DNA of 64,000 bases from the NCBI GenBank assembly GCA_038087875.1, contig JAXLNO010003381.1, positions 1 to 64,000 of the forward strand. Reading direction: 5' to 3'. Source of the stretch: Malacoraja senta (taxonomy: Eukaryota). The notes beneath the pieces are model-generated. The model made no database searches. It saw nothing but the letters and a program-made list of their open reading frames with translations, and had not been told where the DNA came from. Shown piece after piece: positions 11,106-64,000 of the stretch; position 1 is the stretch's first letter, and each line of letters starts with the position of its first letter. The translations under genes and the position numbers were made by a program.

Positions 11106-11299
11106 TTTCCATGTGTAGCCGTTACAATAATCCTGAAATCCCTGTAGGAAAGAATTTTAATGGCTTAATAATCCAGTAATTTGCAACGCTATGAGAGTGA
11201 TTTGTTCCTTGGGTTCTCATCAAAGTTATCATCTGACATTAATTCTGACATCCATTTGTCGTCTTTTTGGAAACATATGGTGCAAAACAGGTGTAAAAG

Positions 11300-11610
11300 C
11301 TAATCCGTGACTGCGGATGGTCAAGATTATAAATGATCTCCTTACTTCTATTTTCTTTTCTTCTCTTCTCTTCTTTTATTCTCTTTCTTCTATTTTCTAT
11401 GTCTCAACTTTCTTTTTTCATTCTTTTTTTTTCTTTTTCACACACTATATAACTCACACTTTTCTATTTTTCATTATCTAACTTTTTTCTTTTTCTTCTT
11501 TATTACAAAAAATAAAAAAAATAAGAAGCTGTACATAAAAGGTATTATGAAAATATGATTGTATACAATTGTACTTACTTCTAATAAAATAAAAATATTT
11601 TAAAAAATTC
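11300..11610 (+). mobile_element. Probable L1/Tx1-type 3' end (pyrimidine tract + A-rich terminus)
   Basis: Long CT-rich tract, then gtacttacttctaataaaataaaaa. Family call is from memory of such ends. Confidence 0.45.
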
Positions 11611-28000: not shown

Positions 28001-31000
28001 CTTGTACCGGCAATGTATAGTGGTGGCATTGCCCATTACGCCCTTGACTGTAGTACGGTTTAGTATCCGTGAATCTGCTGTAATGGAAACAAAATGAGGG
28101 CATGAGAGATCAGAGATGCTGACTGTTGACTTTGGTAGGGAAGAGCCAAGGGATGCACAAACCTTAGTTTAGTTTAGAGATACAGCGTGGAAACAGTCCC
28201 TTCAGCTCACTGAGTCTGCACCGACCAGCGATCCCCGCACATTATCACTTTCCTACACACACTAGGGATAAGTTATAATTGTGCTGAAGCCAATTAACCT
28301 ACAAGCTTTGGAGTGTGGGAGGAAACCGGAGCTCCCGGGGAAAACCCACGAAGGTCACGGGGACAACGTACTAACTCCGTACAGACAGCACCCGTGGTCA
28401 GGATCGAGCCCGGGTCTCTGGGGCTGTAAGGCGGCAACTCTTCCGCTGTGCCCACGGGCTGGCACCCTCATTATTGGGATGCTGAAGATGGAAAGTTACC
28501 GTGAGGCCATGTGTAAATTGGTGGAACAGCACCTCATATGTTGCTGGGTTCGCTTACAACCCAGCAGTATGAATGTTGAATTCTCTAATTTTAAGAAACT
28601 TCTACTAACACTCCACTCCCCTCCCCCCTTGCCCCCTTCCACCCTAGTTCCACCAGCTCTTCTCCAGCTCCCTTCTTTCAGTCTGAGGAATTGCCCCGAC
28701 CCGGAACGGCTGGCCTTGTATACTCTGGAATTTAGAAGGATGAGAGGGAATCTTGGTGAAACATATAAGATTATTAAGGGTTTGGACACGCTCGAGGCAG
28801 GAAACATGTTCCCGATGTTGGAGGAGTCCAGAACCAGGGGCCACAGTTTAAGAATAAGGGGTAAGCCATTTAGAACGGAGATGAGGAAACACTTTTTCAC
28901 ACAGAGAGTGGTGAGTCTGTGGAATTCTCTGCCTCAGAGGGCAGAGGAGGCCGGTTCTCTGGATACGTTAAATAGCTAGAGAGGGCTCTTGAAGATAGCA
29001 GAATCAGGGGATATGGGGAGAAGGCAGGAACGGGGTACTGATTGGGGATGATCAGCCATGATCACATTGAATGGCGGTGCTGGCACGAAGGGCCGAATGG
29101 CCTACTCCTGCACCAATTGTCTATTGTCTATTGACCCAAAATGTCACCTATTCCATTTCTCCCGGGATGCATCCCGCTGAGTTACTCCAGCATTTTGTGT
29201 CTATCTTCAGTGTAAAGCAGGGTCCTTCCTACACACCTTTGTAAGTTTAACTCACTTAACATCGGTAGACGCAATGAACTGCAGATGCTGGAATCTGCGT
29301 AGAAAGTGCTGGAGTAACTCAGCGGGATGGGCAGCACCTCTCCATAACAATCAGTATGCTCATTATGGCACAGCAGTCCAAGTGTATATTATCAGTGAAG
29401 CATATTATCGGTTGTAAAATCTTCGGAAAACCTCTTACCTGTGAAAACATCCAGCATGACAATATCTGAAACATGGATTATTTTTGTCTGAATTGTTCCA
29501 CACCAGTATGTTCCTGAATCATTCTTCTGAAGTTGACTTGTTACAAAAACAGACCCATTGAGTCTTCTCATTGATATCCTTCCACTACTGTCCACTTCTT
29601 TCTCAGTCTTGACTATTACATGGCACCCCTTTCCAGAATAGGCTTTGCACCAGCTGACACGTCCTGTTTTCTCAGCGTTTGGACATTCTATAGTCACTGT
29701 TTCTCCCTCGCCAGCTCTTATCACCATCAAGGGAAGCTGTGCTAAGGAACCTGTTGGGTGAAATTTAGTGCTGGAAATTTTATAGAATCACATCAAAATA
29801 TTCCCATAACCCCCTCCCCCTGGACATAATCTCATGTTCATAAGTTACAGGAGAACATTTGGGCCATTCGGTTCATCGTCTGTCCATCCATTCAATCATG
29901 GCTGATCTATCTCTCCCTCTCAACCCAATTCTCCTGCCTTCTCCCCATAACCCCTAACACCCTATTTACTAACCAAGAATCTGAAAATCTCCGCCTTAAA
30001 AATACCCAATGACTTGGCCTCCACAGCCATCTGTGGCAACGACTTCCACAGATTTACCACCCTGTGTCAAAAGAAATTCATCCACAACTCCTTTGTACAG
30101 GTATGTCCTTTGTAACAGGTACAGGTACAGGATAGTAGCGCAGCGGTAGAGATGCTGCCTTACAGCGCCAGAGACCCGGGTACGTGTGCAGCCTGTACGG
30201 AGTTTGTACGTTCTCCCTGTGACCTGCATAGGTTTTCTCCGGGAGCTCCGGTTTCCTCCCACACTCGAAAGACGTGCAGGTTTGTCGGTTAATTGGCTTT
30301 GATAAAAATCGTTCCTAGTGTGTAGGATAGAACTAATGTGCAGAGATCGCTGGTCAGCATGGACTCGATGGGTCGAAGGGCCTGTTTCCACGCTGTATCT
30401 CCAAACTAAACTAAACGTCCTGTTATTCTGAGGCTGTGCACTCTGGTCCTAGACTCTCCCACCAGTGGAAACATCCTCTCCACATCCACTATTTCCAGGC
30501 CTTTCACTATTCATTACGTTTCAATGTCACCCTCGTCCGAAAATGGGAGGTGGGAGGGAAACTCGAGCATCCGGAAGAAACCCATACGGTGACGGGGAGA
30601 AACTCCACAAAGACAGCATCCGAGGAAGGATTGTAGCGCAAAATCTTCTCTGCTGCATCTTCACTGAAATCATAGAACAGCACAGCACAGAAACAGGCCA
30701 TTTGGTCCACAATCGCCATGCTGAACATGATTCCATGACCAACCCTTATCTGCCCTTGCCAACGACTCTTAAAAACTGATTGAGGTGGTGGGGCATTCTC
30801 CTCACCCTCTCCCCCCACCACAATCAGTCTGAAGAAGGGTCCCGGCCCAAAATATTACCTATCCATGTTCTCTAGAGATGCTGCCTGACCCGCTGAGTTA
30901 CTCCAGCACTTTGTTCTTTTTTCTCTTACATGCACGTGCCATTCCGAAAATCTCTTAAATCCTCTGCTAAATCCCATGCTCTTGGCACAGTTCGTTTTAA

Positions 31001-39211: not shown

Positions 39212-39367
39212 TTAATTATTATCAGTGAGAATTGTTGCGTACACAATTTCTGCGGCACCTTGCCTCTTGGCTTGTCCTTGTGTGTTCATATCCTGAAGGT
39301 TCATGTAAGTATTCTCCGTGCTAGCTGGAGAACGGGTTGTCACGGTGGTATAAATGACAGGGGTTTC
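39212..39367 (-). CDS. Gene B exon 8, ITIM tail ([51 protein letters not shown])
   Basis: Phase-0 acceptor ctccaag|GAA; 52 codons to TAA. Contains VIYTTV (canonical ITIM), TYMNL and IVYATI (ITIM-like). Confidence 0.85.
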   Translation of the reverse strand, partial: ETPVIYTTVTTRSPASTENTYMNLQDMNTQGQAKRQGAAEIVYATILTDNN

Positions 39368-42300
39368 CTTGGAGTCAAGTGAGAAACATAATTACTTAAA
39401 GATAGTGTCAGAAGGTAGACAAAAATGCTGGAGAAACTCAGCGGCTGAGGTAGCATCTATGGAGCGAAGGAGTAGGTGACGTTCGTGTCGAGACCCTTCT
39501 TCAGACTGATGTCAGGGGAGTGGGCGGTACAGAGATAAAATGTAGTCGGAGACAGTAAGACTGGTGGGGGAACTGGGAAGGGGGAAGGGATGGAGAGAGA
39601 GGGAAAGCAAGGGCTGCTTTGACATTTCCAACACGAAACGTCACCTATTTCCTTCAGTCCATAGATGCTGCCTCACCCACTGAGTTTCTCCAGCATTTTT
39701 GTCTACCTTCGATTTTTCCAGCATCTGCAGCTTTCTCAAATGTAGTGTCAGCAGTGTTTNNNNNNNNNNNNNNNNNNNNNNNNNNNNNNNNNNNNNNNNN
39801 NNNNNNNNNNNNNNNNNNNNNNNNNNNNNNNNNNNNNNNNNNNNNNNNNNNNNNNNNNNNNNNNNNNNNNNNNNNNNNNNNNNNNNNNNNNNNNNNNNNN
39901 NNNNNNNNNNNNNNNNNNNNNNNNNNNNNNNNNNNNNNNNNNNNNNNNNNNNNNNNNNNNNNNNNNNNNNNNNNNNNNNNNNNNNNNNNNNNNNNNNNNN
40001 NNNNNNNNNNNNNNNNNNNNNNNNNNNNNNNNNNNNNNNNNNNNNNNNNNNNNNNNNNNNNNNNNNNNNNNNNNNNNNNNNNNNNNNNNNNNNNNNNNNN
40101 NNNNNNNNNNNNNNNNNNNNNNNNNNNNNNNNNNNNNNNNNNNNNNNNNNNNNNNNNNNNNNNNNAACCAATGCCCCCAAGACTAATTAGTTTGGACCTT
40201 ATTTGAGCTTTTTGTGTTTAATAGGTGAAATAAGAGCGCGGCCAGGGTGGCAGAGGTGAAATGAGAGCGCGGCCAGGGTGATGTGGGTCTCAGATGATGC
40301 TGGCTGCCTTTTTGAGGACAGCAAACACAAAATGCTGGAGTAACCAGCGGGTCATGCAACATCTCTGGAGAAAAGGAATAGGTGGCATTTTGGGTCGAGA
40401 CCCTTCTTCAGACCTAAACATAATTACTTAGTTTAGTTTAGTTTAGAGATGCTGAATGGAAACAGGCCCCTTGATCCATCAAGTCCACGCTGACCATCGA
40501 TCACCCATTAACAGTTGTTCCATGTTGTCCCACTTTTGCATCCTACACACTGGGGGCAATTTACAGAAGCCAATTAACCTACAAACCTGCACATCATTGG
40601 AATGTGGGAGTGAACCGGATCACCCGGAGAAAACCCGGGCGGTCACAGGGAGAACGCACGAACACTGCACAGACAACATCCGAGGTCAGGATCGAACTCG
40701 GGTCTCTGGCGCTGTGAGGCAGTAACTCTACCGCTGCGCCACTGTGCTGCCCACTGACAACAGGAGTGAACTCAGTAGAGACCATTAATGGCAACAAAGG
40801 AAGTTAAAGGATGGTGGCACAGCTGGTAGATTCTACTGCCTCACAGCGACCATCGATCACCTGTTCCACCTTAGATCTATGTTATCCCACTTTCTCATCC
40901 ACTCCCTACCCACTGGGAGAAATTTATGGAGGGCTATTCACTTACAAATCCGCCCGTCTTTGGGATGTGGGAGGAAACCGGAGCATCCAGACGAAACCCA
41001 GGTGGTCACAGGAAGAAACCTGCAAACTCCACACAGACAGCACCCATGTTCAGAATGTAACCCAGATGTTGTGCTTTGAGTTTGTGCCTGGCCTCACCAA
41101 GGCAGTGGAGAAGGCCAAGGATGGGCACTCGATCATTGAGGTGCCATGTTAAGTGATCGATATGTCATGTGATGTGCAACCCTTCAGGGGTGATATCCAG
41201 TAAGGTTGTTTTATTCCCTGGGGCTACAACATGCTGCGGCATTGCCTTACCTTGAAACTTCCTGCTGGATTTATCTGACTTATAATTCTCTGTCCATTTG
41301 AGCCTGAAAAATATAATGATAATTAAATCTTATATGGACTTAATTGAAGTCAAACACGCAAAGGATAATGTTGCATTTTATCCATTGAGGTCATACTTGA
41401 TTCCCTTTCATGAAAACTTAGTTTAGAAATACAATATGTAAATAGGCCCTTCGGCCCACCAACCACTGATCACCCGTTCACATTAGTTCTCCCAGAGACA
41501 CACTTTTCACCCAGAGAGTTGTGAATCTGTGGAATCTTCACCCAGAGAGTTGTGAATCTGTGGAATTCTCTGCCACCGCGAGCAGTGGGGCAATTTATAG
41601 AGGCCAATTAACCTACTAACCGGCACGTCTTTGGGATGGGTCATACAGTGTGAAAACAGGCCCTTCGGCCCAACTTGGCCACGCCGCCCAACATGCCCCC
41701 CATCTACATGAGTCCCACCTGCCTGCATTTGGCCCCATATCCTTCTAAACCTGTCCTATCCATGTACTTGTCCCAATGTGGGATGCGGAAGGAAACCGGA
41801 GCACCTGGAGGAAACCCATGCGGTCAATAGGGAGAACATGCAAACTCCACGGCAGGCAACACCCGAGGTCAGTATTGAACTTTGGACTCTGATGCTGTGA
41901 GGTAGCAGCTCTACCAGTTGCGCCACTGCACTACCCCTTTATAAAAATTACAACGACTTGATGGAAATTACTGCATCAGTAGGTGTGAAGTAGGATATTG
42001 TATTTATGTAGCATTTTATGAAAGCTTCAGGAAGTTGCATTGGATTATGAAATACTTGCTTCATGACACAGTCTACTGTAGAACAATGTTAAATCTCATG
42101 GGAAACCTCATTATGACCTGGCAGGTAACTTATTTACCATTTCTTGGATATGGTAAAGTTTAGTTTAGTTTTGAGATACAGCGTGGAAACAGGCCTTTCG
42201 GCCCACCGAGTCCGCACCGACCAGCGATCACCGCACACTAACGCTATCCTACATTAGGGCCAATTTTTACAAGGGAAATAGAAAATAAGTGCAGGAGTAG

Positions 42301-45300
42301 GCCATTTGCCCTTTGAGCCAGCACTGCCATTCAATATGATCATGGCTGATCATCCATAATCAGTATCCCGCTCTGGGCTTTTCTCCCCATATTCCTTGAA
42401 TCCCTTAGCCCTAAGAGCTAAATCGAACTTTCTCTTGAAAACATCCAGTGAATTGGCCTCCACTGCCTTCTGTGGCAATATTCCCACAGGCTCACAACTC
42501 TCTGGGTGTTAAAGGTTTTCCTCATCTCAGTCCTAAATGGCCTACCCCTTATTCTTAAACTGCGACCCCTGGTCCTGGACTCCCCCAACATCCTGAACAT
42601 TTTTCCTGCATCTTACTTGTCCAATCCTCTAAGAATTTTATATGTTTCTATAAGATATCCTCTCATCCTTCTAAATTCCAGTGAATACAAGCCCAGTCGA
42701 CACATTCTATCATCATATGTCAGTCCCATCATCCTGGGAATTAACCTGGTGAACCTACGCTGCACTCCCTCAATAGCAATAATGTCCTTCCTCAAATAGG
42801 AGACCAAAATTGCACACAATACTCCAGGAGTGGTCTCACAAGGGCCCTGCAACAACTGCAGTAGGACTTCCTTGCTCCCAAACTCAAATCCTCTCGCAAT
42901 AAAGGCCAACATGCCATTGGCTTTCTTCACTGCCTGCTGTACCAGCATGCTTACTTTCAGTGACTGATGAACAAGCACACCCAGGTCTTGTTGCACCTCC
43001 CCTTCTCCTAATCTGACACCATTCAGATAATAATCTGTCTTCCTGTTCTTGCCACCAAAGTGGATAACCTCACATTTATCCACATTATACTCTATCTGTC
43101 ATGCTTCTGCCCACTCACCCAACCTATCCAAGTCACCCTGCAGCCTCATAGCATCCTCCTTGCTGCTCACACAACCATCCAACTTTGTGTCATCCGCAAA
43201 CTTAGAGATGTCACATTTAATTCCCTCGTCTAAATCGTAAATATATATTGTATATAACTGGGGTCCCAGCACCGAGCCTGGCGGCACCCCACTAGTCATG
43301 CCTGCCAATCTGAAAAGGACCCATTAATTCCTACTCTTTGCTTCCTGTGTGCTCTAATTTTGCACACTAATCTCTTGTGTGGGACCTTGTCAAAGGCTTT
43401 TTGAAAGTCCAGATACACCACATCCACTGGTTCTCCCTTATCCATTCTACTTGTTACATCCTCAAAAAATTCCAAAAGATTAGTAATGCAATGATTTCCT
43501 CTTCATAAATCCATGCTGACTTTGACCAATCTTGTCACTGCTTTCCAAATGCGCTGCTATAACATCTTTCATTATCAATTCCAGCATCTTCCCCACTACC
43601 GATGTAAGGCTAACTGGACTATAATTCCCCGTTTTCTCTATCCTTCGTTTCGTAAAAAGTGGAATTACATTGGCTACCCTGCAGTTCACAGGAACTGATC
43701 CAAGTGGAGAGAACATTGGAAAATTATCACCAATGTATCCACGATTTCTCGGGCCACCTCCTTGCGTACTCAGGGATGCAGACCATCAGGCCCTGGGGAT
43801 TTATATGTCCCAACAGTTTACCTAACACCATGTAAGGACTCCATCCCCCACTCCCAATTCCTCCGTCTACGCCGCATCTGCTCCCAGGATTGAGGCGTTC
43901 CACACCAGGGCATCTGAATGTCCTCATTCTTCAGGGAACGGGGGTTCCCCTCCTCCACCATAGATGAGGCTCGCACCAGGGTCTCTGCCATACCCCGCAA
44001 CACTGCTCTCTCTCCCCATCCCCCCACTCACAACAAGGGCAGAGTTTCCCTAGTCCTCACCTTTCACCCCACCAGCCGTCACATACAACATGTGATCCTC
44101 CGTCAGTTTCGCCACCTCCAACGTGACCCCACCACTCGCCACATCTTCCCATCTCCCCCCATGTCTGCCTTCCGCAAAGACCGCTCCCTCTGTAACTCCC
44201 TTGTCAATTCTTCCCTTCCCTCCCATACCTCTCCCTCCCCTGGTACTTTCCCTTGCAACCGCAAGAGACGCAACACTTGTCCCTTCACCTCCCTCCTCGA
44301 CTCCATTCAAGGACCCAAGCAGTCGTTCCAGGTGCGACAGAGGTTCACCTGCATCTCCTCCAACCTCATCTATTGCATCCGCTGCTCTAGATGCCAGCTG
44401 ATCTACATCGGTGAGACCAAGCGGAGGCTTGGCGATCGTTTCGCCGAACACCTCCGGTCGGTCCGCAATAACCAACTTGACCTCCCGGTGGCTCAGCACT
44501 TCAACTCCCCCTCCCATTCCGTATCTGACCTCTCTGTCCTGGGTCTCCTCCATGGCCACAGCGAGCAACACCGTAAATTGGAGGAAATGCACCTCATATT
44601 CCGCTTGGGCAGTCTACATCCTGGGGGCTTGAACATTGAATTCTCCCAATTCTGCTAGCCCTTGCTGTCCCCTCCCCCTCATCAGCCCTCTGGTTGTCTC
44701 CTCCCCCCCCCCCCAGCCCTCAGGCTCCTCCTCTGCCTTTTTCCTATTTTCCTTTCTTCTCCCCACACCCTATCAGTCTGAAGAAGGGTTTCGGCCCGAA
44801 ACGTTGCCTATTTCCTTCGCTCCATAGATGCTGCTACACCCGCTGAGTTTCTCCAGCATTTTTGTGTACCTACCATTTTCTGACTAATGTGGACTCCCTT
44901 CATTTCTTCCCTCCCACTAGATCCTCGGTCCCTAGTATTTCCAGGAGATTGTTTGTATCTTCCTTAGTGAAGACAAAACAAAGTACCTGTTTAACTGTTC
45001 TGTCATTCCCTTGTTTCCCATTATAAATCCACCTGTCTCTGACTGTAAGGGACCTACATTCGTCTTCATTAATCTTTTCCTTTTTACATACCTAAAGAAA
45101 CTTTTACAGTCAGTTTTTATATTCCCCGCAAGCTTTCTTTCATGCTCTCCCCCCCCCCCCCTTTGTCCCCCTCTGTTCTAAATTTCTCCCAGTCCTCTGG
45201 TTTGCCACTTCTTCTGGCCAATTTGTATGCCTCTTCCTTAGATTTAACACTATCCTTGACTTCCCCGTCAGCCACGGTTGAGCCGCCTTCCCAGTTTTAT

Positions 45301-48300
45301 TTATTTGCCAGACGGGGATGAACAATTTCTGTGTTCATCCTTGCGGTCTTTAAATCTTTGCCATTGCATCTCCACTGTCAAGTATAGTTTGCCAGTCTAT
45401 CCTAGCCAATTCAGTCTGAAGAAGGGTTTCGGCCCGAAACGTTGCCTATTTCCTTCCAGTGTTGTATGTCTCTATGACTTCATGATTCAGCAAAGTTGTC
45501 ACCAGTCATCTCTCCTGCCTTCCTCCTGCAGATCTTACATCCACAGCTCCTGGACATTTCCAATGGTTCTACTTCAAAACAGCTTTACAATTTCCGGATA
45601 ATTTCACTGCATGGAGATTCAGAGGTTTCACGTGTCATCGCTAAGCTAAATAACAGGACGTCAGTGTCTGAACCTGTTGGGAAATATGTTTGGCTCCTTC
45701 TGCATCTGAAAGATCTCAATCGTCTCCTGGCTTACTGTGGCCATCACTACCTCTGTACCATTTGCAGATGAAAACATTCTTGTTCAATCTGGATAAGACT
45801 GACACACTTCTGCATATTATTGCAGCTTCCAACCAGATGGTTTTCACAGAACCATCAGTATGGAAGCAGGCCCTTTGGCCCTTTGAGCTCATGCTGGCCC
45901 ATCAAGCATCCATTTCCATTCATCTCCACAATCCCATTTTTTTTCGCCCCTTCTTCCTATCAATTCACCACAGATTTGACCACTTTCATCACACGGATCA
46001 AACCGACAGAGGAAGTGGTAAAGGCAAGTCCAAATCCATCGTTTAAAAGATATTTGGAGAGATACATGGAGAACAAAGCTTTAAGAGTGATGTGGGACAA
46101 GCACAGGTAAGTGGGACTAGCGTAGGGAAGCACCTTGGGCGTCAGTAAGGACGAGTTGGGCTAAAGGGCCTGTCTCTCTGGTGTAAACCCATGCGCTCAC
46201 AGGGAGAACGTATAAACTCTATACAGACAGCACTCATAGTCAGGATCGAGCCCGGGTTTCTGGCGTTGTAAGTCAGCAACTCTTCTGCTTTGCCACTGTG
46301 CCGCCCTGAAATGTCACCTGTCCATGTTCTCCAGAGATGCTGCCTGACCCGCTGAGTTACACCAGCACTTGGTGTCTTTCCCTGCTGTTATACGGTAGGT
46401 GAATGGTCTGTGTTTGTGAAAAGCACCTCAGAGAGAAGTGCCAAATCTTTGTTAATCAGCAAGAGTGCCCCTTGATATTTACATACATTCAACGGAACTT
46501 ACCAGTTTTCTTTTTCTGCCTCATTTTTACACATAGGATAATGGCAGCGATGAACAGAAGAAAGACAATTGTCAAGGCAATCGGTAGAACAACTTGCCAT
46601 GAAAATGTACCTGCCTCCCTGCAAAATACAAGAAAAAACAATGACGAGCTCATGGTAATAGGACTGATTCCCTCCCCAGTAACGAACCATGCGTTTCGAT
46701 CCGGAAAGTAAAAATGTGGAAATATACTTGAATGCAGTGCAGGTTAAATTCTATAATATTATGAATAATTCTATTGGTATTTAAGGAACTATAAAGTAGT
46801 TTAGAGTTTAGAGATATGACATGGGAACAGGCCCTTTGGCCCATTGTGTCCATGCCGACCATTTAGGGTTGGCACGGTGACGCAGTGGCAGGGTTGCTCC
46901 CTCACAGCGCAGGAGACCCGGGTTCGATCCTGACTACCGGTGCTGTCTGTACAGAGTTTGTACGTTCTCCCTGTGATCGCAAGAGTTTTTTCCAGGTTCT
47001 CCGGTTTCCTCCCACATTCCAAAGACGTGCGGGTTTGTAGGCTAATTGGCTTCTGTAAATTGTCCGTAATGTGTAGAACAGAACTGGTGTATGGGGTGAT
47101 CGCTGCTCAGAGCGGACTCGGCGGGCCAAAGGGCCCATTTTCACGCTGTATATTTAAACTGAGCAGAACTGAACTTCACTAATTTGTTCTCAGGTGAGGC
47201 TGAGTTGCCTCTTCGAGTTACTAACCATTTTGAACCAGGAGCCTCAGTGGAACTTGCTTCCTTGGTGGTTGGTGTACCTTGAGGCGTGGTGGTCAGAGTG
47301 TTTGTGGTGGTGATCATGTCTGGGCGGCGTGTTTGAGACCCTTGTGGAGATAAAGAAAATTAAGTTTTTAAATATTAAATGCCTGAAAGCACGTTCTGTG
47401 CCACTTTAGTGAGGTGTGGGAGATGCTCCAGTTGGGAACGCTCTTGCTCTGTGTGGGGAGATTCTTGGTTTGAATCCCACTGCACACATTTGGGCAAAGC
47501 TCCTTCTGAGGCCACGATAGATGGACCAAGCCTCTTGATCTAGACAGGAGGCTCACTCATTAAGATGCCGCAGGATGGTCACAAGCATTCAGAGACTTCT
47601 TTCATGCCCATCAGCGTCCCACAGGCTGTGTTGTCTGCCTGCTGCTGGAGTTAGGCACGTGTCTTCTACGTTGGAGAAGAACTTGGGAGCGGGAGGATCC
47701 ATGGACTATTTGCGTTAAGCGGACTGAATTGGAAATAATGCAATTTGGTTGGAGGTATCTAACTGAAACATTAACTCTCATTCTCTCTCCACAGAAGCTG
47801 CCGATCCCGTTGAGTATCTCATCTTGCACAGTTTGTGTGACTCAGTGTAAAGTCTATATCACTCAGCTCATGCGGGTTCTTCGTTCATAAGTTATAGAGG
47901 CAGATTTAGGCCATTGGCCCATTGAGCGCCATTCAATCATGGCTGATCTATCTCTCCCTCTCAACCCCATTCTCCTGCGTTCTCCCCATATTGCTTGACA
48001 CCCGTACTAATCAATAATCTGTCAATCTCCACCTTAAAAATACCCAATGACTTGGGCCTCATTGGAAACATGGTAAAAGCTTTTTCCTGTACCTCAACGG
48101 ACAATAGACAATAGGTACAGGAGTAGGCCATTCGGCCATTCGTGCCAGTACCGCCATTCAATGTGATCATGGCTGATCATCCCCAATCAGTACCCCGTTC
48201 CTGCCTACTCCCCATATCCCCTGACTCCGCTATCGTTAAGAGCCCTATCTAGCTCTCTCTCGAAAGTATCCATTATTATATTTGTCACCTCAGTACAGGT

Positions 48301-51300
48301 GACAACAATAAACTCAGCTCATGGCTCACTAATGTTTGTGAGACACAAGGAATTGCAGGTGCTGGAATCTTGAGCAAAACAAAAAGTGCTGGAGTAACTC
48401 AGCAGGTCAGGCAGCATCTGTGGAAGGAATGAACTGACGATGTATAGGGTTGGGATCCTTCTTCAGATGTTGTGTGTGTGGTGGGTGTAACAGTGACGGG
48501 CAGGGGGAGAGGGTGAGGGGGCGCCCCCCCCCTGCCCCAGTGAGGGGCACCAGAGGAGAGGTTCTGGTCCCGGAGAGATCGTCTTTGGGGAAATGAGCCG
48601 CCAGCAGCAGAACCGCCGGTCCCCATTGATGAGCTCACCCCCCTCCCCCACACACTGCTCCTGGGACAGTGAGATCGTGGTGTGGCCCCATGCAGCGGGT
48701 CCCCCCTACCCCCCTCACCTCCCCCCAACTCCACCCCCCCCACAGACCCCCGGGGATGTCACCATCAGGACCGAGGCCGGGAATTCCCAGGCTGGAATTT
48801 TCACATCTGGGAGAGTGAGGAGAGATCATCAACGTACCTTCAGAAACCTTCAATGAGATGGAGGTCTTTTCATTGAATTTCCATCGAACCTGTATGACAC
48901 ACCAGTACCGTCCTTCATCACTCTTCTCCAGGTTGTCGATGGTTACGGAAAGTTTCTGTTGTGTTTTGTTATCAGTCATCGATGTTCTCTCATGTTGTGG
49001 GTCATCAGTAGAAACCACGGTAGAAGATGTCAAGTAATATTCACCATTACTCCATAGCTTCCTGTTGTCTCTGTAATCCTGACCATACGGACATTCCACA
49101 GTGATCGACTGCCCTAACTCTCCCCTCGCCTCCTCGGGTCCAGTTATTTCCCTTGACCCTGTTGGCACATTAATGATGAAAGATCACTCACACTGCAGCA
49201 AAACAAGCAAAGTTTTAACAATAAAAAATATGTCATTTGTGCTGTTCAGACAGGTTCATGGTTTCGCATAGATCATGTGTAGCAAGGAACTGCAGGTGCT
49301 GGTTTACACCTAAAGATAGACAGAAAGTGCTGGAGTAACTCGGCGGGTCAGGCAGAATCTCTGGAGAAATCGGATGGGTGTCCTTTTCGGGTCGGGACCC
49401 TTCTTGATCTCCCGGTTGCCAACCCTGTCCACGTCCCTTCCCATTCCCACACTGACCTTTCTGTCCAGGGCCTCCTCCATTGCCAGAGTGAGGCCACATG
49501 CAAATTGCAGGAACCGCACCTCATATTAGCTCAGGTAGTTTACAACCCAACGGTTTGAACGTTGAATTCTCTAATTGTAAGTATCTTCTACTAACCTGCC
49601 CCCTCCCCTCCCCCCTTGACCCCTTTATCCACCCTGGTGGGTGAGGGGCCGGAGTAACTCAACGGGCCAGTAAATGAGGTATCTACCAACCCCACCCCCC
49701 TCACCCCGACCCCCGGGGATGAGTCAACGAGTCACCGTCAGGACCGAGGTCGGAATTCCCAGGCTGGAATTTTCACATCTGGGAGAGTGAGGAGAAATCG
49801 TCAACGTACCTTCAGAAACCTTCAATGAGATGGAGGTCAATTCAATGGGTGAATCCTTTTCCTTTTCTATCACACACCTGTAGTATCCTTCATCACTCTT
49901 CTCCAGGTTGTCGATGGTTACTGAAACTATCCGTTGTGTTTTGTTATCAGTCATCGATGTTTTCCCTTGTTGTGGGTGATCAGTAGAAACCACGGTCACA
50001 GGTGCTGGGTAATAATCACCTTTAAGCCATCGCTTCCTGTTGTCACTGTATTCCCGATCATACTGACATTCCAAAGTGACCGACTGCCCCAACACTCCCC
50101 TCACCTCCTCGGGTTCAGTTATTCCCCTTGACCCTGTGGGCACATTAATGATGAAATATCACTCACACTGCAGCAACACAAGCTGAGGTTTAACAATAAA
50201 AAACATGTAATTTGTACTTAAGAGTTTAAGAAGGAACTGCAGATGCTGGAAAATCGAAGGTAGACAAAAGTGCTGGAGAAACTCAGCGGGTGCAGCAGCA
50301 TCTATGGAGCGAAGGAAATAGGCAACGTTTCGGGCCGAAACCCTTCTTCAGACTGTACAGACGGGTTCATGGTTTCGCATAGATCATGTGTAGCAAGGAA
50401 CTGCAGGTGCTGGTTTATAACAAAGATAGACACAAAGAGCTGGAGTGCAACAGAATCTATGGAAAAGAAGAGACACAAAATGCTGGAGTAACTCAGCGGG
50501 ACAGGCAGCATCTCTGGAGAAACCAACGGGTGATGTTTCCTCACCCATTCCTTCTCTCCAGAGATGCTGCCCGTCCCGCTGAGTTACTCCAGCATTTTGT
50601 GTCTCTTCTTTTCCATAGATTCTGTTGCACTTTAATGCTTTTCCCGCTGGTGTTAATTCCCATTTCACCGGGATTGTTCCCCAAGTTCCAGTGAAAGCAG
50701 AACTGCTCCTGAATCTATCTGGTGCCCAGATCCTCCTTCCCTGTGGGCGTGGCTTGACCTGAGTGGTGGTCATGTGACAGGAAGCCAACCTGTCACTCAC
50801 TCTGACCCACCCTGTGTTCAACCTCACTACAACCCACTTCCCCATTGAACTAGTAGAAACAAGGAACTGCAGATGCTGGTTAATACACAAAAGGACACAA
50901 AGTGCTGGAGTAACTCCACGGGTCAGGAACCATCTCTGGAGAAAGTGAAACTCTCTGGGTGAAAAGGTTTTTCCTCATCTGAGTCCAAAATGGCCTACCA
51001 CTTATTCAGGTCTCAACCCTAAACGTCACCTATCCATGTTCTCCAGAGATGCTGCCTGACCTGCTGACTTACTGGTATGGTATGGTATATGGACACACTG
51101 ATTTGTTTTGTAGTAAATACCTACTATGTTCTGTGTGCTGAAGCAAAGCAAGAATTTCATTGTCCTATCAGGGACACATTACAATAAACTCACTTGAACT
51201 TGAACTTGAACTCCAGCACTTTGTGCTTTACTAAAGCTGAATAGGCAGCTGCCTGTGATGCCTCAGCAGGTCAGGCAACATCGCTGGAGAACATGGATAT

Positions 51301-54300
51301 GTAATGTTACAGGTAGATACATGGTGGCACAGTGGCACAGGGGTAGAGTTGCTGCCTTACAGTGCCAGAGACCCATGTTTGATCCTAACCTCGGGTGCTG
51401 TCTGTACGGAGTTTGTACGTTCTCCCCGTGACGTCGTGGGCTTTCTCCGGGTGCTCCAGTTTCCTCCCACACTCCAAAGATGTGCAGGTTTGTAGGTTAA
51501 CTGGCTTTCGTTAAAAATTGTAATTTGTTCTCGTGTGTAGGATAGTGTTAGTGTGCCGGGTGATCGCTGGATGGTGTGGAATTGGTGGGCCGAAGGGCCT
51601 GTTTCCGTACTGTGTCTCTAAAGTCATTAAAGGAAAGTCACCAAGTGATTCAGCTTGACCTGCAGTGTTACTCCAGCACTTTGTGTTTTACTAAAGCTGA
51701 ATAGCCAGTTGCCTGTGGTGACTCAGCAGGTCAGGCAGCATCTCTGGAGAACATGGATAGGTGACGTTTCAAGTCAAGACCATGAGATACTGCCTGACCT
51801 ACTGAGTTACGCCAGCACTTTGTGCCCCATTGAACTAAACTTCCCGGCCTGTGGAGGAAGCTGGATCTGCCACTGATGTTTCAAACTCCACGTCCACCTG
51901 GAATGAACATGAGGTGTCGTTTTCACACAAAGTCTGGTGGGTGTATGGATGAAGCTGCCAGAGGAGGTAGTTGAGGCAGGGACTATCCCATCATTTAAGA
52001 AACAGTTGGACAGGTACATGGATAGGACAGGTTTGAAGGGACATGTACCAAACGTAGACAGGTGGGACAGGTGTTGCTGAGACATGTTGGCCATTGTGGG
52101 TAAGTTGGGCCGAAGGGCCTGTTTCCACACTGTATCACTCTATGACTCAAACACATGTGAAACTCTGCAGATTCAGGAGCTGGGGTGGAGAGACATCATC
52201 AGATCAGTCCAGGTCCGCTCACAAATGCCTCGAAGGAGAACTCAGAGGCTAGGGAAAGCACGGTGTGAAGAACAGCAGAGTCTGTTGTTAGGCAGCTGGT
52301 TTTTCTCGGGAGAGATTACCACAACTTCTCCAAATGTTAAATTGGACAGTCACTCATTTGAGATGCCCGCCTGTTCCCAATGGCTGGCATTCACAGGTTT
52401 TTTCTTTGAATGTGCTGAGGTTTAGGTTCAACATTTCCCATTGCAGTGCGTGGAGGGAGTGACGTGTGTCTTTGATCGACACTAAATGCTGGAGTAACTC
52501 AGCGGGTCAGGAGGCATCTCTGGAGAGAAGGAATGGGGGCGCCCCCCCCCCCCGCCCCAGTGAGGGCACCAGAGGTTCTGGTCCAGGAGAGATCGTCTTT
52601 GGGGAAATGAGCCGCCAGCAGCAGAACCGCCGATGCCCATTGATGAGCTCCCCCCCCCCCCACACTGCTCCTGGGACAGTGAGCTTGTAGTGTGGCCCCT
52701 TGCAGCGGGTCCCCCCTACCCCCCCTCACCTCCCCCCAACCCCTCCCCCCCCCACGGACACCCGGGGATGAGGCACAGAATCACCATCAGGACCGAGGCC
52801 GGAATTCCCAGGCTGGAATTTTCACATCTGGGAGAGTGAGGAGAAATCGTCAACGTACCTTCAGAAACCTTCAATGAGATGGAGGTCAATTCAATGGGTG
52901 AATCCTTTTCCTTTTCTATCACACACCTGTAGTATCCTTCATCACTCTTCTCCAGGTTGTCGATGGTTACTGAAACTATCCGTTGTGTTTTGTTATCAGT
53001 CATCGATGTTTTCCCTTGTCGTGGGTGATCAGTAGAAACCACGGTCACAGGTGTTGGGTAATAACCACCTTTAAGCCATCGCTTCCTGTTGTCACTGTAT
53101 TCCCGATCATACTGACATTCCAAAGTGACCGACTGCCCCAACACTCCCCTCACCTCCTCGGGTTCAGTTATTCCCCTTGACCCTGTGGGCACATTAATGA
53201 TGAAATATCACTCACACTGCAGCAACACAAGCTGAGGTTTAACAATAAAAAACATGTAATTTGTACTTAAGAGTTTAAGAAGGAACTGCAGATGCTGGAA
53301 AATCGAAGGTAGACGAAAGTGCTGGAGAAACTCAGCGGGTGCAGCAGCATCTATGGAGCGAAGGAAATAGGCAACGTTTCGGGCCGAAACCCTTCTTCAG
53401 ACTGTACAGACAGGTTCATGGTTTCGCATAGATCATGTGTAGCAAGGATCTGCAGGTGCTGGTTTATAACAAAGATAGACACAAAGAGCTGGAGTAACTC
53501 AGCGGGACAGGCAGCATCTCTGGAGAAACCAACGGGTGATGTTTCCTCACCCATTCCTTCTCTCCAGAGATGCTGCCCGTCCCGCTGAGTTACTCCAGCA
53601 TTTTGTGTCTCTTCTTTTCCATAGATTCTGTTGCACTTAATGCTTTTCCCGCTGGTGTTAATTCCCATTTCACCGGGATTGTTCCCCAAGTTCCAGTGAA
53701 AGTAGAACTGCTCCTGAATCTACCTGGCGCCCAGATCCTCCTTCCCTGTGGGCGTGGCTTGACCTGAGTGGTGGTCATGTGACAGGAAGCCAACCTGTCA
53801 CTCAATCTGACCCACCCTGTGTTCAACCTCGCTACAACCCACTTCCCCATTGAACTAGTAGAAACAAGGAACTGCAGATGCTGGTTAATACACGGAAGGA
53901 CACAAAGTGCTGGAGTAACTCAACGGGTCAGGAACTATCTCTGGAGAAAGAGGAACTCTCTGGGTGAAAAGGTTTTTCCTCATCTAAATGGCCTACCGCA
54001 TATTCAGGTCTCAACCCTAAACGTCACCTATCCATGTTCTCCAGAGATGCTGCCTGACCTGCTGACATCAGCACTTTGTGCTTTACTAAAGCTGAATAGC
54101 CTGTGATGGCTTAGCGGGTCAGGCAACATCGCTGGAGAACATGGATAGGTAATGTTACGGGTAGAGACATGGTGGCACAGTGGCACAGGGGTAGAATTGC
54201 TGCCTTACAGCGCCAGAGACCCATGTTTGATCCTGACCTCGGGTGCTGTCTGTACGAATTCTGTACGTTCTCCCCGTGACAGCGTGGGCTTTCTCCAGTT

Positions 54301-56396
54301 TCCTCCCACACTCCAAAGACGTGTAGGTTTGTAGGTTGAATGGCTTTCGTTAAAATTGTAAATTTGTTCCTCGTGTGTAGGATAGTGTTACTGTGCCGGG
54401 AGATCGCTGGATGGCGTGGACTTTGTGGGCCAAAGGGCCTGTTTCCGTGCTGTATATCTAAAATCACTAGAGGAAAGTCACCAGGAGATGCAGCTTGACC
54501 TGCAGTGTTACTCCAGCACTTTGTGTTTTACTAAAGCTGAATAGCCAGTTGCCTGTGGTGACTCAGCAGGTCAGGCAGCATATCTGGAGAACATGGAGAG
54601 GTGACGTTTCAAGTCAAGACCATGAGATACTGCCTGACCCACTGAGTTGCGCCAGCACTTTGTGCCCCATTGAACTAAACTTCCCGGCCTGAGGTGGAAG
54701 CTGGATCTGCCACTGATGTTTCAAACTCCACGTCCACCTGGAATAATCCTGAGGTGTCTTTTTCACACAAAGTCTGGTCGGTGTATGGATGAAGCTGCCA
54801 GAGGAAATAGTTGAGGCAAGGCTATCCCATCATTTAAGAAACAGTTGGACAGGTACATGGATAGGACAGGTTTGAAGGGACATGGACCAAACGTGGACAG
54901 GTGGGACTAGTGTTGCTGAGACATGTTGGCCGGTGTGGGTAAGTTGGCCCGAAGGGCCTGTTTCCACACTGTATCACTCTATGACTCTAACACATGTGAA
55001 ACTCTGCAGCTTCAGGAGCTGGGGTGGAGACACATCATCAGATCAGTCCAGGTCCGCTCACAAGCCACAAGACAAATGCCTTGAAGGAGAACTCAGAGGC
55101 TGGGGAAAGCACGGTGTGAAGAACAGCTCGAGCAGCAGAGTGTTTTGTAAGGCAGCTGTTTTTTCCCAGAAGGGAGTGATTACCACAACTTCTCGAAATG
55201 CTAAATTGGACAGTCTCTCTGGTGCTTCCTCATTTGAGATGCCCGCCTGTTCCCATTGGCTGGTTTTATCTTTGAATGTGCTAAGTTTTAGGTTCAACAT
55301 TTCCCATTGCAGTGCGTGGAGGGAGTGCCGTGTGTCTTTGATAGACACTAAATGCTGGAGTAACTCAGCGGGTGAGGCGGCATCTCTGGAGAGAAGCAAT
55401 GGGTGACGTTTCGGGTCGAGACCCTTCTTCAGACCGAGTGTCGGGGGGCGGACGTATGCAAGGGGTAAAGCGTGAAAACGCAGATCAAAGCAGATGGTGT
55501 TAAGGAAATGTAGATAGCAGAGCCGGAGAGCAGGAGGAATCACAGAGGGGAACAGCGGGGGAGGGTGTTGCAGAATTCTCGTTGGGGATTGGAGGAGAAC
55601 TTCTGTCCCAGGCTAACTGAACCACACCAAAGGCCCGCATTTACATCTAGCGAAAGGTCAGCGTGTGGCACTCTGGTTACCGAGTCAGAGAGTCGTTGGT
55701 TCAATTCCCACTCCCGAAGCTCGAGGACTGAGGGAGTGCGGTACTGAGGGAACTCGCCACTGCTGGAGGTGGTGTCACTTTGCCGAGGCATTTAGCTGAT
55801 CTGCTGTCTGCTCTCTCAAGTCACTGAGAAAGTTCACCTGTAGATAGCATGCACCAGAATAGTGGAGCGAACTATCTGTTCTGGGGCCAAGAGTTACCCC
55901 TACACCCATGATCAACAGGGCCAGCTGCGGACTTTATTTCTGAGGCTGCGGCCTCTGGTCCTACACTCTCCCACTAGTGGAAACATCCTCACCCCATCCA
56001 CTCTATCCAGGCCTTCATTATTCGGTATTAAACATTAAGCTTCACTATTCGGTAAGTTTCAATGAGGTCCACAAGGCCAGGCAATCTCTAGAAAGTTATC
56101 TCCACAGGGAGCTAGCTGGGTGCGATTTGGCTGCACACAACACGACAACCGCTGATGGAAGTCTCTACAGGAACTAACGAGTGTTGAGCAATTTATCATC
56201 AGCTCCCCACATAGTACAGAGAGGTCTGTGGTTACAAATAATTCAAGACGCTGGTAAATAATTCTGAAGAACAGAGCATTTTGTAAAACAACGATTTACC
56301 TGGTGTAAGACCAACAGCGACCAGAACCAGCAGAGCGACTGTTCCCCTGGGTCTGGGCCGTTTCTGGTGGGTGAATTCTCCCTGTCCCATCGCCAT
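39212..56396 (-). CDS. Gene B model: CD300/pIgR-like (MDIR-like) inhibitory Ig-superfamily receptor, 3 V domains, 501 aa. join(complement 56300-56396, 52859-53182, 49810-50133, 48838-49158, 47226-47340, 46503-46618, 41251-41303, 39212-39367)
   Basis: All 7 introns are GT..AG, with phases 1,1,1,1,2,1,0 consistent; total 1506 nt = 501 aa + stop. Contains a signal peptide, 3 V-set domains, a Thr-rich stalk, an uncharged TM and three Tyr motifs (VIYTTV, NTYMNL, IVYATI). Family call is from sequence motifs, not a database search. Confidence 0.85.
39760..40165. other. Assembly gap (406 N) in the last intron of gene B
   Basis: Run of N. Confidence 0.99.
40430..40752 (-). mobile_element. V-SINE (HE1-like)
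   Basis: Reverse-complement copy. Confidence 0.85.
41251..41303 (-). CDS. Gene B exon 7, cytoplasmic ([18 protein letters not shown])
   Basis: Acceptor tatatttttcag|G and donor CAAG|gtaagg; 53 nt, phase 1 to 0, open. Confidence 0.75.
43832..44871 (+). mobile_element. Second 5'-truncated Penelope-like element (ORF 43918-44658), inserted into a CR1 copy
   Basis: Near-identical to 490-1482. CR1 sequence resumes on both sides; possible 5-bp duplication accat at 43827-43831 and 44872-44876. Confidence 0.88.
44778..44805 (+). ncRNA. Hammerhead-like motif in PLE pLTR
   Basis: Identical to the 1390-1417 motif. Confidence 0.7.
45416..45443 (+). ncRNA. Hammerhead-like motif, short solo pLTR fragment
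   Basis: CTGAAGAAGGGTTTCGGCCCGAAACGTT. Confidence 0.65.
46503..46618 (-). CDS. Gene B exon 6, transmembrane ([39 protein letters not shown])
   Basis: Acceptor ttttttcttgtattttgcag|G and donor ACTG|gtaagt; 116 nt, phase 2 to 1. Uncharged hydrophobic span followed by a basic stop-transfer run. Confidence 0.9.
46866..47160 (+). mobile_element. V-SINE (HE1-like)
   Basis: Same structure. Confidence 0.85.
47226..47340 (-). CDS. Gene B exon 5, Thr/Pro-rich stalk ([37 protein letters not shown])
   Basis: Acceptor ttctttatctccacaag|G and donor AATG|gttagt; 115 nt, phase 1 to 2; mucin-like composition. Confidence 0.8.
48838..49158 (-). CDS. Gene B exon 4, Ig V-set domain Vc ([25 protein letters not shown]...[27 protein letters not shown])
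   Basis: Acceptor gccaacag|GG and donor GAAG|gtacg; 321 nt, phase 1-1; canonical V-set motifs. Confidence 0.9.
49810..50133 (-). CDS. Gene B exon 3, Ig V-set domain Vb
   Basis: Same splice sites and length as Va; 321/324 nt identical to it. Confidence 0.9.
50324..50351 (-). ncRNA. Hammerhead-like motif, sense to gene B intron 2
   Basis: aacgtttcgggccgaaacccttcttcag on the plus strand is an intact motif on the minus strand. Confidence 0.65.
51322..51622 (+). mobile_element. V-SINE (HE1-like), duplicated at 54168-54462
   Basis: Same structure. Confidence 0.85.
52859..53182 (-). CDS. Gene B exon 2, Ig V-set domain Va ([25 protein letters not shown]...[28 protein letters not shown])
   Basis: Acceptor cccacag|GG and donor GAAG|gtacg; 324 nt, phase 1-1. 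Has the B-strand Cys, C-strand Trp and D-x-G-x-Y-x-C motif. Confidence 0.9.
53373..53400 (-). ncRNA. Hammerhead-like motif, sense to gene B intron 1
   Basis: Identical to 50324-50351; duplicated with the V-exon unit. Confidence 0.65.
55405..55432 (-). ncRNA. Hammerhead-like motif, sense to gene B intron 1, GUC site
   Basis: Reverse complement CUGAAGAAGGGU[CUCG]ACCCGAAACGUC; stem II U-A replaces the U-G of the other subfamily. Confidence 0.65.
55660..55915 (+). mobile_element. Diverged DeuSINE (SacSINE1/AmnSINE-like) relic
   Basis: tRNA-like B-box ggttcaattcc followed by gagggagtgcggtactg..ggaggtggtgtcacttt..ctgctctctcaagt, resembling the Deu domain as recalled. Confidence 0.5.
56300..56396 (-). 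CDS. Gene B exon 1, signal peptide [32 protein letters not shown](G)
   Basis: ATG at 56396; basic n-region then hydrophobic h-region; phase-1 donor CCAG|gtaaat. The paralogous copy at 63557 differs by 4 synonymous and 2 non-synonymous changes. Confidence 0.8.
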
Positions 56397-60186: not shown

Positions 60187-60386
60187 NNNNNNNNNNNNNN
60201 NNNNNNNNNNNNNNNNNNNNNNNNNNNNNNNNNNNNNNNNNNNNNNNNNNNNNNNNNNNNNNNNNNNNNNNNNNNNNNNNNNNNNNNNNNNNNNNNNNNN
60301 NNNNNNNNNNNNNNNNNNNNNNNNNNNNNNNNNNNNNNNNNNNNNNNNNNNNNNNNNNNNNNNNNNNNNNNNNNNNNNNNNNNNNN
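60187..60386. other. Assembly gap (200 N) inside the spacer of the inverted duplication
   Basis: Run of N. Confidence 0.99.
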
Positions 60387-63556: not shown

Positions 63557-63653
63557 ATGGCGGTGGGACAGGGAGAATTCACCCACCAGAAAAGGCCCAG
63601 ATCCAGGGGAACAGTCGCTCTGTTGGTTCTTGTCGCTGTTGGTCTCACACCAG
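63557..63653 (+). CDS. Gene C exon 1, signal peptide [32 protein letters not shown](G); paralogue of gene B, rest of gene beyond the window
   Basis: 91/97 nt identical to the gene B leader in inverted orientation; intact ATG and CCAG|gtaaat donor. Confidence 0.75.
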
Positions 63654-64000
63654 GTAAATCGTTGTTTTACAAAATGCTCTGTCTTTAGAATTATTTACCA
63701 GCGCCTTGAATTATTTGTAACCACAGACCTCTCTGTACTGTGTGGGGAGCTGATGATCAATTGCTCAACACTCGTTAGTTCCTGTAGAGACTTCCATCAG
63801 CGGTTGTTGTCGTGTTGTGTGCAGCGAAATCGCACACAGTTAGCTCCCTGTGGAGAAGGGAGATAACTATCTAGAGCTTGCCTGGCCTTGTGGACCTCAT
63901 TGAAACTTACCGAATAGTGAAGTTTAATGTTTAATACCGAATAATGATGGCCTGGATAGAGTGGATGGGGTGAGGATGTTTCCACTAGTGGGAGAGTCTA

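Follow-up and report, generated by a model that had tools for sequence, protein, structure and literature searches.

Two neighbouring exons may be nearly identical because they were copied recently or because something made them alike long after they were copied, and a receptor gene of the skate Malacoraja senta raises the question of which of the two is the case. The gene lies on the minus strand of positions 1 to 64,000 of contig JAXLNO010003381.1 (assembly GCA_038087875.1), a stretch of 64,000 nucleotides (nt) analysed here as a whole and called the window, and it carries three V-set immunoglobulin (Ig) exons in tandem, named Vb, Va and Vc. An original prediction, made from the letters of the window, took Va and Vb for a recent whole-exon tandem duplication and proposed domain-number expansion with diversifying selection on a ligand-facing loop, or gene conversion homogenising the rest of the exon. 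Our data point to another order of events, namely an old tandem duplication of the V exon followed later by non-allelic gene conversion of about 1.1 kb around the exon, a reading to which we assign a probability of roughly three in four.

Va and Vb belong to a tandemly duplicated unit

Va and Vb were located on the minus strand by a six-frame scan with the peptide given in the original prediction (the coordinates of all features are collected in Table 1). The two exons have identical polypyrimidine/AG acceptors and GTACGT donors and are both of phase 1-1, and each copy therefore adds exactly one domain in frame. As had been predicted, they differ at 3 of 324 nt, and the three differences (D/G, A/T and Q/R) are all non-synonymous; each is a transition, and they fall within 46 nt. 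The 46-nt patch is flanked by 250 and 220 identical bases, and three sites placed at random in 324 nt would cluster this tightly with a probability of 0.055.

The duplicated unit around the exons is equally real. Direct-repeat blocks pair 49686-51068 with 52736-54066 (94.1% identity) and 51214-52537 with 54069-55403 (89.4%), at a period of 3049 nt at the exon and of 2840-2866 nt further 5', and the homology between unit A (with Va) and unit B (with Vb) spans 55403 to 52736. Unit B is collinear with positions 11036-14627 of the Amblyraja radiata (thorny skate) locus L001, which has a single copy, and unit A repeats it with a deletion of about 200 nt in the Va 3' flank, a loss that Vb does not share. 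At the junction, the unit B 3' flank ends in a G-run, directly followed by a truncated copy of a short interspersed repeat, with which unit A begins. The left breakpoint accordingly lies inside this repeat, near L001 11109, unit A starting with its 3' half only, and the right breakpoint lies in the G-run of intron 2, near L001 14627. No long direct repeat flanking the breakpoints was found in the alignment against single-copy A. radiata, which argues for a tandem duplication of non-homologous or replication type. The short repeat itself is present at 55340-55434, 52474-52537 and 49315-49405; recombination between such flanking repeats was considered and rejected, because the junction cuts the repeat mid-way and the third copy lies 230 nt beyond the end of the unit. 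The locus thus combines the features of a tandem exon duplication: (i), intact splice sites, (ii), a symmetric phase, (iii), an open frame and (iv), a single-copy outgroup.

A low-divergence tract covers the exon and its adjoining introns

The divergence between the two units is far from uniform. A likelihood scan of the unit A/unit B alignment, with significance estimated by 200 permutations, delimits a tract of about 1.1 kb, in which the exon is accompanied by about 750 nt of the intron upstream and 56 nt of the intron downstream (likelihood ratio 55, reached by none of the permutations). Inside it the copies mismatch at 11 of 1090 positions (1.0%) with 2 indel openings, versus 97 of 1515 (6.4%) and 12 indel openings outside, and the contrast persists at non-CpG sites (0.58% versus 5.6%, p = 3e-13) and between the tract intron and the remaining intron (p = 3e-10). 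The 3' edge is sharp: 220 nt without a mismatch are followed by dense mismatches from 49750 until the homology ends near 49686. In the core of the tract, from 50697 to 49751, about 903 bases align and six of them mismatch: the intron accounts for three (50400, 50363 and 50266) and the exon for the other three, and half of the six are CpG transitions.

It follows from these counts that the predicted excess of intron over exon divergence holds away from the exon and fails next to it, where the core intron (3/579) and the exon (3/324) do not differ (Fisher p = 0.67). Constraint cannot explain the identity of the two copies, because the same tract intron that differs by 0.5% between A and B differs by about 4.5% between A and A. 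radiata, with 25 of 642 sites changed in A. radiata only. At the local neutral rate the exon is expected to show 0.37 synonymous and 1.3 non-synonymous differences, and the 0 and 3 seen are unremarkable. We thus attribute the near-identity of the exons and the absence of synonymous differences to gene conversion, which the original prediction had offered as one of its two explanations and which is the best one for the divergence profile, and not to selection on the exon.

The duplication is about as old as the split from other skate genera

Three outgroup loci were compared, from A. radiata (L001, P0157), Rhinoraja longicauda (L002, P0154) and Leucoraja erinacea (L003, P0175). L001 is about 93% identical and matches the minus-strand gene collinearly over its full length, from the leader to the tail, with about 6.4% mismatch outside the V exons, and is therefore the orthologue in another genus. 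This locus is gap-free and contains one Va/Vb-type unit and a Vc orthologue, with no second copy, and in L003 the intron-1 segment occurs once in each of both L. erinacea gene copies. The expansion in domain number is thus borne out: an in-frame V exon was added, and the second unit is absent from the orthologous A. radiata and L. erinacea loci. Vc is older, as had been proposed, since its unit is 79.5-81.6% identical to those of Va and Vb and its orthologues are present in two other skates.

The site patterns among unit A, unit B, A. radiata and L. erinacea differ between the tract and its surroundings. Outside the tract, 515 sites give 17 changes in A only, 13 in B only, 10 in A. radiata only, 8 in L. 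erinacea only, 5 that unite A and B against the two other species and 0 conflicting; A and B are sisters, yet their common ancestor reaches back as far as the root of the three species. In the tract intron, 392 sites give 1, 2, 6, 9, 9 and 0 in the same order, and A and B coalesce recently. Such phylogenetic incongruence marks non-allelic gene conversion or a double crossover, an event that would have taken place long after an old duplication. The 6.4% that separates A from B outside the tract equals the divergence of the gene from its thorny-skate orthologue, which would put the duplication at about the time when this lineage separated from Amblyraja and Leucoraja. The word recent, applied by the original prediction to the duplication, fits the conversion instead.

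A history consistent with these observations may be suggested. A segment of about 2.9 kb, which reached from the 3' part of intron 1 through the first V exon to about 0.3 kb into intron 2, would have been duplicated head to tail through a non-homologous junction joining the G-run to the middle of the short interspersed repeat. Being of phase 1-1, the copy would splice in frame and add a membrane-distal V domain. Much later, conversion between the units would have overwritten about 1.1 kb including the exon, leaving exons that are 99% identical. The three differences may then be mutations younger than the conversion, the remnant of a small patch that escaped it, or the product of a micro-conversion from another paralogue.

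The same kind of change has occurred elsewhere in the family. Copy 2 of the L. erinacea gene has three V exons through a separate 1.14-kb unit (94% identity between neighbours), Rhinoraja has four V exons spaced 10-15 kb apart, and the electric ray Narcine bancroftii encodes five- to six-domain relatives (P0001 and P0151) in which V-domain pairs are repeated with identical amino acids, as a very recent two-exon duplication or conversion would produce. Since these expansions differ from one species to another, domain number has changed repeatedly and independently in the family. Skipping of V exons was considered as the source of the 3-V and 4-V products of L. erinacea and rejected, because the 622-amino-acid product spans two gene copies. 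This product, the 'isoform X1' of L003 2001-50419, combines the leader and first V exon of one copy with the V exons of the other, about 36 kb downstream, and looks like a chimeric gene model.

Selection acts on the C-C' loop of the family

The AlphaFold2 model of Va (predicted local distance difference test 92.6) has the fold of a V-set domain, and an alignment of 40 sequences shows no change at Cys22 and Cys86, which form the B-F disulfide, or at Trp35 of the C strand. Judged from secondary structure and homology, the three differences do not share one loop as had been thought: residues 39 and 43 are modelled in the C-C' loop (38-44), and residue 54 in the two-residue C'' strand that follows the C'-C'' turn. 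A Foldseek search with the model retrieved mouse CD300lf (6e47_G, TM-score 0.86), human CD300f (2nms, 0.90) and domain D1 of pIgR (1xed, 0.83). In CD300lf, the cleft that binds lipid and norovirus is formed by the C-C' and FG loops; its floor is the Cys36-Cys44 disulfide, and Gln41 and Arg42 line it (PMC6166816). Two of the three sites would therefore, by this analogy, lie in a ligand-contacting loop, which supports for the family the ligand-facing position put forward in the original prediction.

Selection was measured from Nei-Gojobori counts on skate V exons, the proportions of non-synonymous (pN) and synonymous (pS) differences being pooled over six independent V-exon pairs. For the whole domain, the ratio of non-synonymous to synonymous divergence (dN/dS) among skate V exons ranges from 0.65 to 1.9; Va and its A. 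radiata orthologue are separated by a dN of 0.130 and a dS of 0.077, and Vc and its A. radiata orthologue have a dN/dS of 1.07. The non-synonymous divergence of Va (30/248) exceeds that of the intron of the same gene (512/7979, p = 0.001), and its dS matches the intron. In the C-C' loop (residues 38-45), pN reaches 0.248 versus a pS of 0.079 (pN/pS 3.1), and the excess is significant against the pooled pS of 0.066 (p = 5e-7). The ratio is 2.6 in the segment singled out by the original prediction (residues 37-56) and 1.13 in the framework; the comparison across paralogues, proposed there as a check, thus shows the elevation that diversifying selection on the loop calls for.

Entropy over 18 rajiform domains, Vb excluded, identifies two hypervariable segments, residues 39-45 and 90-98, which by homology would form the two walls of a cleft of the CD300lf type. 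The three Va/Vb sites (39, 43 and 54) rank 14, 2 and 19 of 107 in variability, and by chance three sites would all lie among the 19 most variable with a probability of 0.005. The eight codons of the C-C' loop hold two non-synonymous changes between Va and Vb versus 0.095 expected at the local neutral rate (Poisson p = 0.004), a post hoc value whose rate comes from three intron mismatches. On these counts diversifying selection on the C-C' loop is supported for the skate family and only suggested for the Va/Vb pair. As the original prediction itself had cautioned, the three differences by themselves cannot show selection, although selection may have favoured them.

Weighing the alternatives

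Several observations weigh against an old duplication with later conversion. The transition:transversion ratio outside the tract is 42:55, which hints at alignment noise in the repeat-rich intron and would inflate the 6.4%, although the cleaner 515-site four-taxon block outside the tract still gives a divergence of about 6%. The A. radiata divergence of the tract intron, about 4.5%, is itself below the 5.9-7.2% found outside the tract. The D1 and D2 units of A. radiata are 90% alike (L001 13756-15546), versus 80-82% between Va/Vb and Vc, and A. radiata D1 may thus be partly converted, which would weaken the 'orthologous' dN/dS values. Finally, the two-copy structure is known from one assembly, and a conversion tract could be mimicked if mis-mapped reads entered the polishing of a long-read assembly.

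A possible, if rather unlikely, variant of the conversion history holds that the 46-nt patch is old sequence, spared by patchy heteroduplex repair or by selection against converted alleles. At 6.4% divergence the patch would contain 2.9 differences, and the three seen fit this as well as they fit new mutation; the identical bases on either side of the patch and the diversifying selection on the loop in the family are also in its favour. However, parsimony against A. radiata D1 makes all three changes specific to Vb, when old divergence should fall in both copies (an argument to which three sites lend little power; moreover, ACA at residue 43 is shared with Vc, and the CGA/CAA site is CpG-hypermutable and recurrent in paralogues), and the clustering reaches only p = 0.055.

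Selection might also keep the homogenised Va and Vb different only in the C-C' loop, either by removing the conversions that would erase the difference or by re-diversifying the loop quickly; we consider this unlikely.

Less likely still, a third V exon from another part of the gene cluster would have donated the three changes of Vb together, through one short conversion. Their restriction to Vb and to 46 nt would fit such an event, and each state is found in the family outside Vb: Rhinoraja D1, D3 and D4 have GGT at residue 39, Vc has ACA at residue 43, and A. radiata D2 and L. erinacea have CGA at residue 54. Yet no exon with GGT, ACA and CGA together was found among the 14 exons examined. 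The window contains one further V exon of this type, Vc, and it has one of the three.

We regard an assembly artefact as very improbable. Divergent haplotypes could have been stitched in tandem, or the 1.1-kb core of a duplicate homogenised by polishing, and a repeat-rich locus of a multigene family seen in one assembly is where this might be expected. Against it, (i), the assembly has no N gap from 40166 to 60186, (ii), the breakpoint is specific, the flanks differ and the deletion of about 200 nt affects the Va flank only, (iii), a divergence of about 6% with many indels is very deep for alleles and, (iv), six differences survive in the tract core, half of them CpG transitions, as real mutations would.

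Least credible, and already contradicted by the divergence profile, is a recent duplication of the whole unit with purifying selection on the exon and diversifying selection on the three loop changes, which could appeal to the exclusively non-synonymous differences, two of them in a loop with a family pN/pS of about 3, and to the Poisson excess in that loop, but which faces units that are 6.4% and 12 indel openings apart outside the tract, as deep as the split from two other genera, 579 nt of adjoining intron as similar as the exon, which purifying selection leaves unexplained, and a framework pN/pS of about 1.1 in the family, at which strong purifying selection is not expected.

A predicted inhibitory receptor with three V domains

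A gene model was assembled with guidance from the skate proteins matched by the Va domain. It comprises eight exons on the minus strand (leader, Vb, Va, Vc, stalk, transmembrane and two cytoplasmic exons), which form a single open frame of 1506 nt (501 amino acids) with AG/GT at every intron and which align over their whole length with L. erinacea P0155 (71% identity). The leader peptide is 94% identical to that of A. radiata P0157 and joins Vb in frame, so that in the splice model Vb would be the first, membrane-distal domain; both Va and Vb are predicted to be spliced in. A word search of RNA runs with positions 48830-50135 returned a single run, with 5% of the words and next to no exon words, and the matches to runs only tentatively classed as RNA probably come from repeats. 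Relative to A. radiata, the stalk exon has two in-frame deletions (33 nt and 9 nt) and its last split codon encodes Trp, not Arg. The second cytoplasmic exon matches its counterparts in the tails of L. erinacea and A. radiata at 92-96% identity.

The layout is that of a type I paired receptor bearing immunoreceptor tyrosine-based inhibitory motifs (ITIMs), with a leader, an uncharged membrane span and motifs of the form (S/I/V/L)xYxx(I/V/L). The uncharged span and the VIYTTV/IVYATI tail therefore place the gene in the inhibitory type of a paired receptor family, and the receptor would be expected to signal inhibition. Taken together, the gene is best described, from its predicted product, as an ITIM-tailed, three-V-domain CD300/pIgR-like (MDIR-type) skate receptor. 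The database labels of its relatives, 'polymeric immunoglobulin receptor-like' and 'CMRF35-like', result from automatic naming. An intact ITIM exon is also present in A. radiata at L001 20108-20263, yet the annotated product ends in a different exon.

Table 1. Features of the M. senta receptor gene and of its duplicated unit (window positions)
Feature	Position	Strand	Description
Leader exon	56300..56396	-	ATG at 56396, 97 nt, phase-1 GT donor
Unit B	52544..55471	-	3' part of intron 1, exon Vb, ~315 nt of 3' flank
Low-divergence tract, copy B	52803..53892	-	likelihood scan
Exon Vb	52859..53182	-	324 nt, V-set Ig, Pfam V-set E = 3.4e-15, AG/GT, phase 1-1
Tandem-duplication junction	52537..52544	-	three-way alignments with single-copy A. 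radiata
Unit A	49638..52541	-	copy of 3' part of intron 1, exon Va, 3' flank with ~200-nt deletion
Low-divergence tract, copy A	49754..50887	-	likelihood scan
Exon Va	49810..50133	-	324 nt, V-set Ig, predicted second domain, Pfam V-set (PF07686) E = 3.7e-15
46-nt patch with all three differences	Va 49971..50016; Vb 53020-53065	-	exon alignment
Difference 1	50016 (Va) / 53065 (Vb)	-	GAT/GGT, D39G
Difference 2	50005 (Va) / 53054 (Vb)	-	GCA/ACA, A43T
Difference 3	49971 (Va) / 53020 (Vb)	-	CAA/CGA, Q54R, CpG transition
Exon Vc	48838..49158	-	321 nt, third V domain, orthologous to A. radiata D2
Thr/Pro-rich stalk exon	47226..47340	-	gene model
Transmembrane exon	46503..46618	-	membrane span without charged residue
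Cytoplasmic exon 1	41251..41303	-	gene model
Cytoplasmic exon 2	39212..39367	-	two ITIM-like motifs (VIYTTV and IVYATI), stop codon

The introns and surroundings of the gene are rich in repeats and in relatives. An interspersed repeat of about 60-90 nt is dispersed across all introns, and open frames of a long interspersed nuclear element reverse transcriptase lie at 42600-43800 (minus strand) inside the intron between the transmembrane exon and the first cytoplasmic exon. Runs of N occur at 39760-40165, in the intron between both cytoplasmic exons, and at 60187-60386. Two further V-set exons on the minus strand, 27659-28168 and 29395-29787, retain an extra Cys pair (WCK...C) and probably belong to another, downstream pIgR/CD300-like gene. 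At the other end of the window a head-to-head paralogue begins with a leader exon at 63557-63655 (plus strand), its V exons lying past the window end; its 33-amino-acid leader peptide is identical to that of A. radiata P0157.

Relation to known receptor families

The closest structural parallel is CD300lf/CLM-1 (PDB 6E47, 5FFL and 2NMS), with which the skate domain shares the V-set fold (TM-scores 0.86-0.90) at 26-31% identity and a profile match of E = 4.5e-34, and whose cleft loops correspond to the hypervariable C-C' (39-45) and FG (90-98) loops of the skates. The CD300 family likewise has paired inhibitory (ITIM) and activating forms. There are two differences. CD300 proteins have one V domain, whereas the skate gene has three in tandem, and the C36-C44 disulfide at the floor of the CD300lf cleft has been lost from the skate domains: Leu36 and Pro44 stand in its place in Va and Vb, and all rajiform members lack both Cys36 and Cys44, which other batoids, sharks and tetrapod relatives retain, as do CD300 and pIgR.

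With pIgR the gene shares several tandem V domains of the CD300/pIgR type, one phase-1 exon each, and no solved chain gives a better profile match than pIgR (E = 7e-75 across five domains). Unlike pIgR, however, the skate gene has ITIMs and not a transcytosis tail, has three V domains followed by a mucin-like stalk, and lies in a cluster of fast-evolving paired receptors. A true pIgR orthologue was therefore rejected as its identity: the tail is about 70 amino acids long with ITIM-like motifs, and the gene belongs to a multigene cluster with a head-to-head paralogue.

Modes of tandem Ig-exon evolution similar to the one proposed here are familiar from other immune receptors. In KIR, LILR and the teleost NITR and DICP families, phase 1-1 Ig exons duplicate in tandem and are homogenised by non-allelic gene conversion, with dN at least equal to dS in the ligand-binding loops. 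The skate locus resembles them in all three respects and differs in that the breakpoints of the unit, the limits of the tract and a single-copy outgroup are seen together. Among cartilaginous fishes, the modular domain immune-type receptors (MDIR) of the clearnose skate form a multigene family with activating and inhibitory members whose V domains resemble those of CD300, TREM and pIgR (PMC3031540). We describe our gene as MDIR-type and treat membership as a lead; the skate gene studied here has V domains only and no C2 domain, in which it departs from MDIR.

The case is well resolved but ordinary: a lineage-specific V-exon duplication, then partial homogenisation. A literature search found no paper on exon duplications of this skate receptor family. 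One locus here shows the full cycle of a domain-number change followed by concerted evolution in a multi-domain innate immune receptor, and the cycle is visible through a datable duplication with mapped breakpoints, a bounded conversion tract and a single-copy outgroup. It also carries a caution for sequence scans, since an exon that is more similar than 'the intron' does not indicate selection unless the adjoining intron is compared. The hypervariable loops of a cartilaginous-fish receptor can now be tied to the ligand cleft of mammalian CD300lf, itself defined by experiment, which gives a concrete place to look for ligands. If it is true that selection preserves the loop difference between Va and Vb, the receptor would display two near-identical domains with distinct binding specificities.

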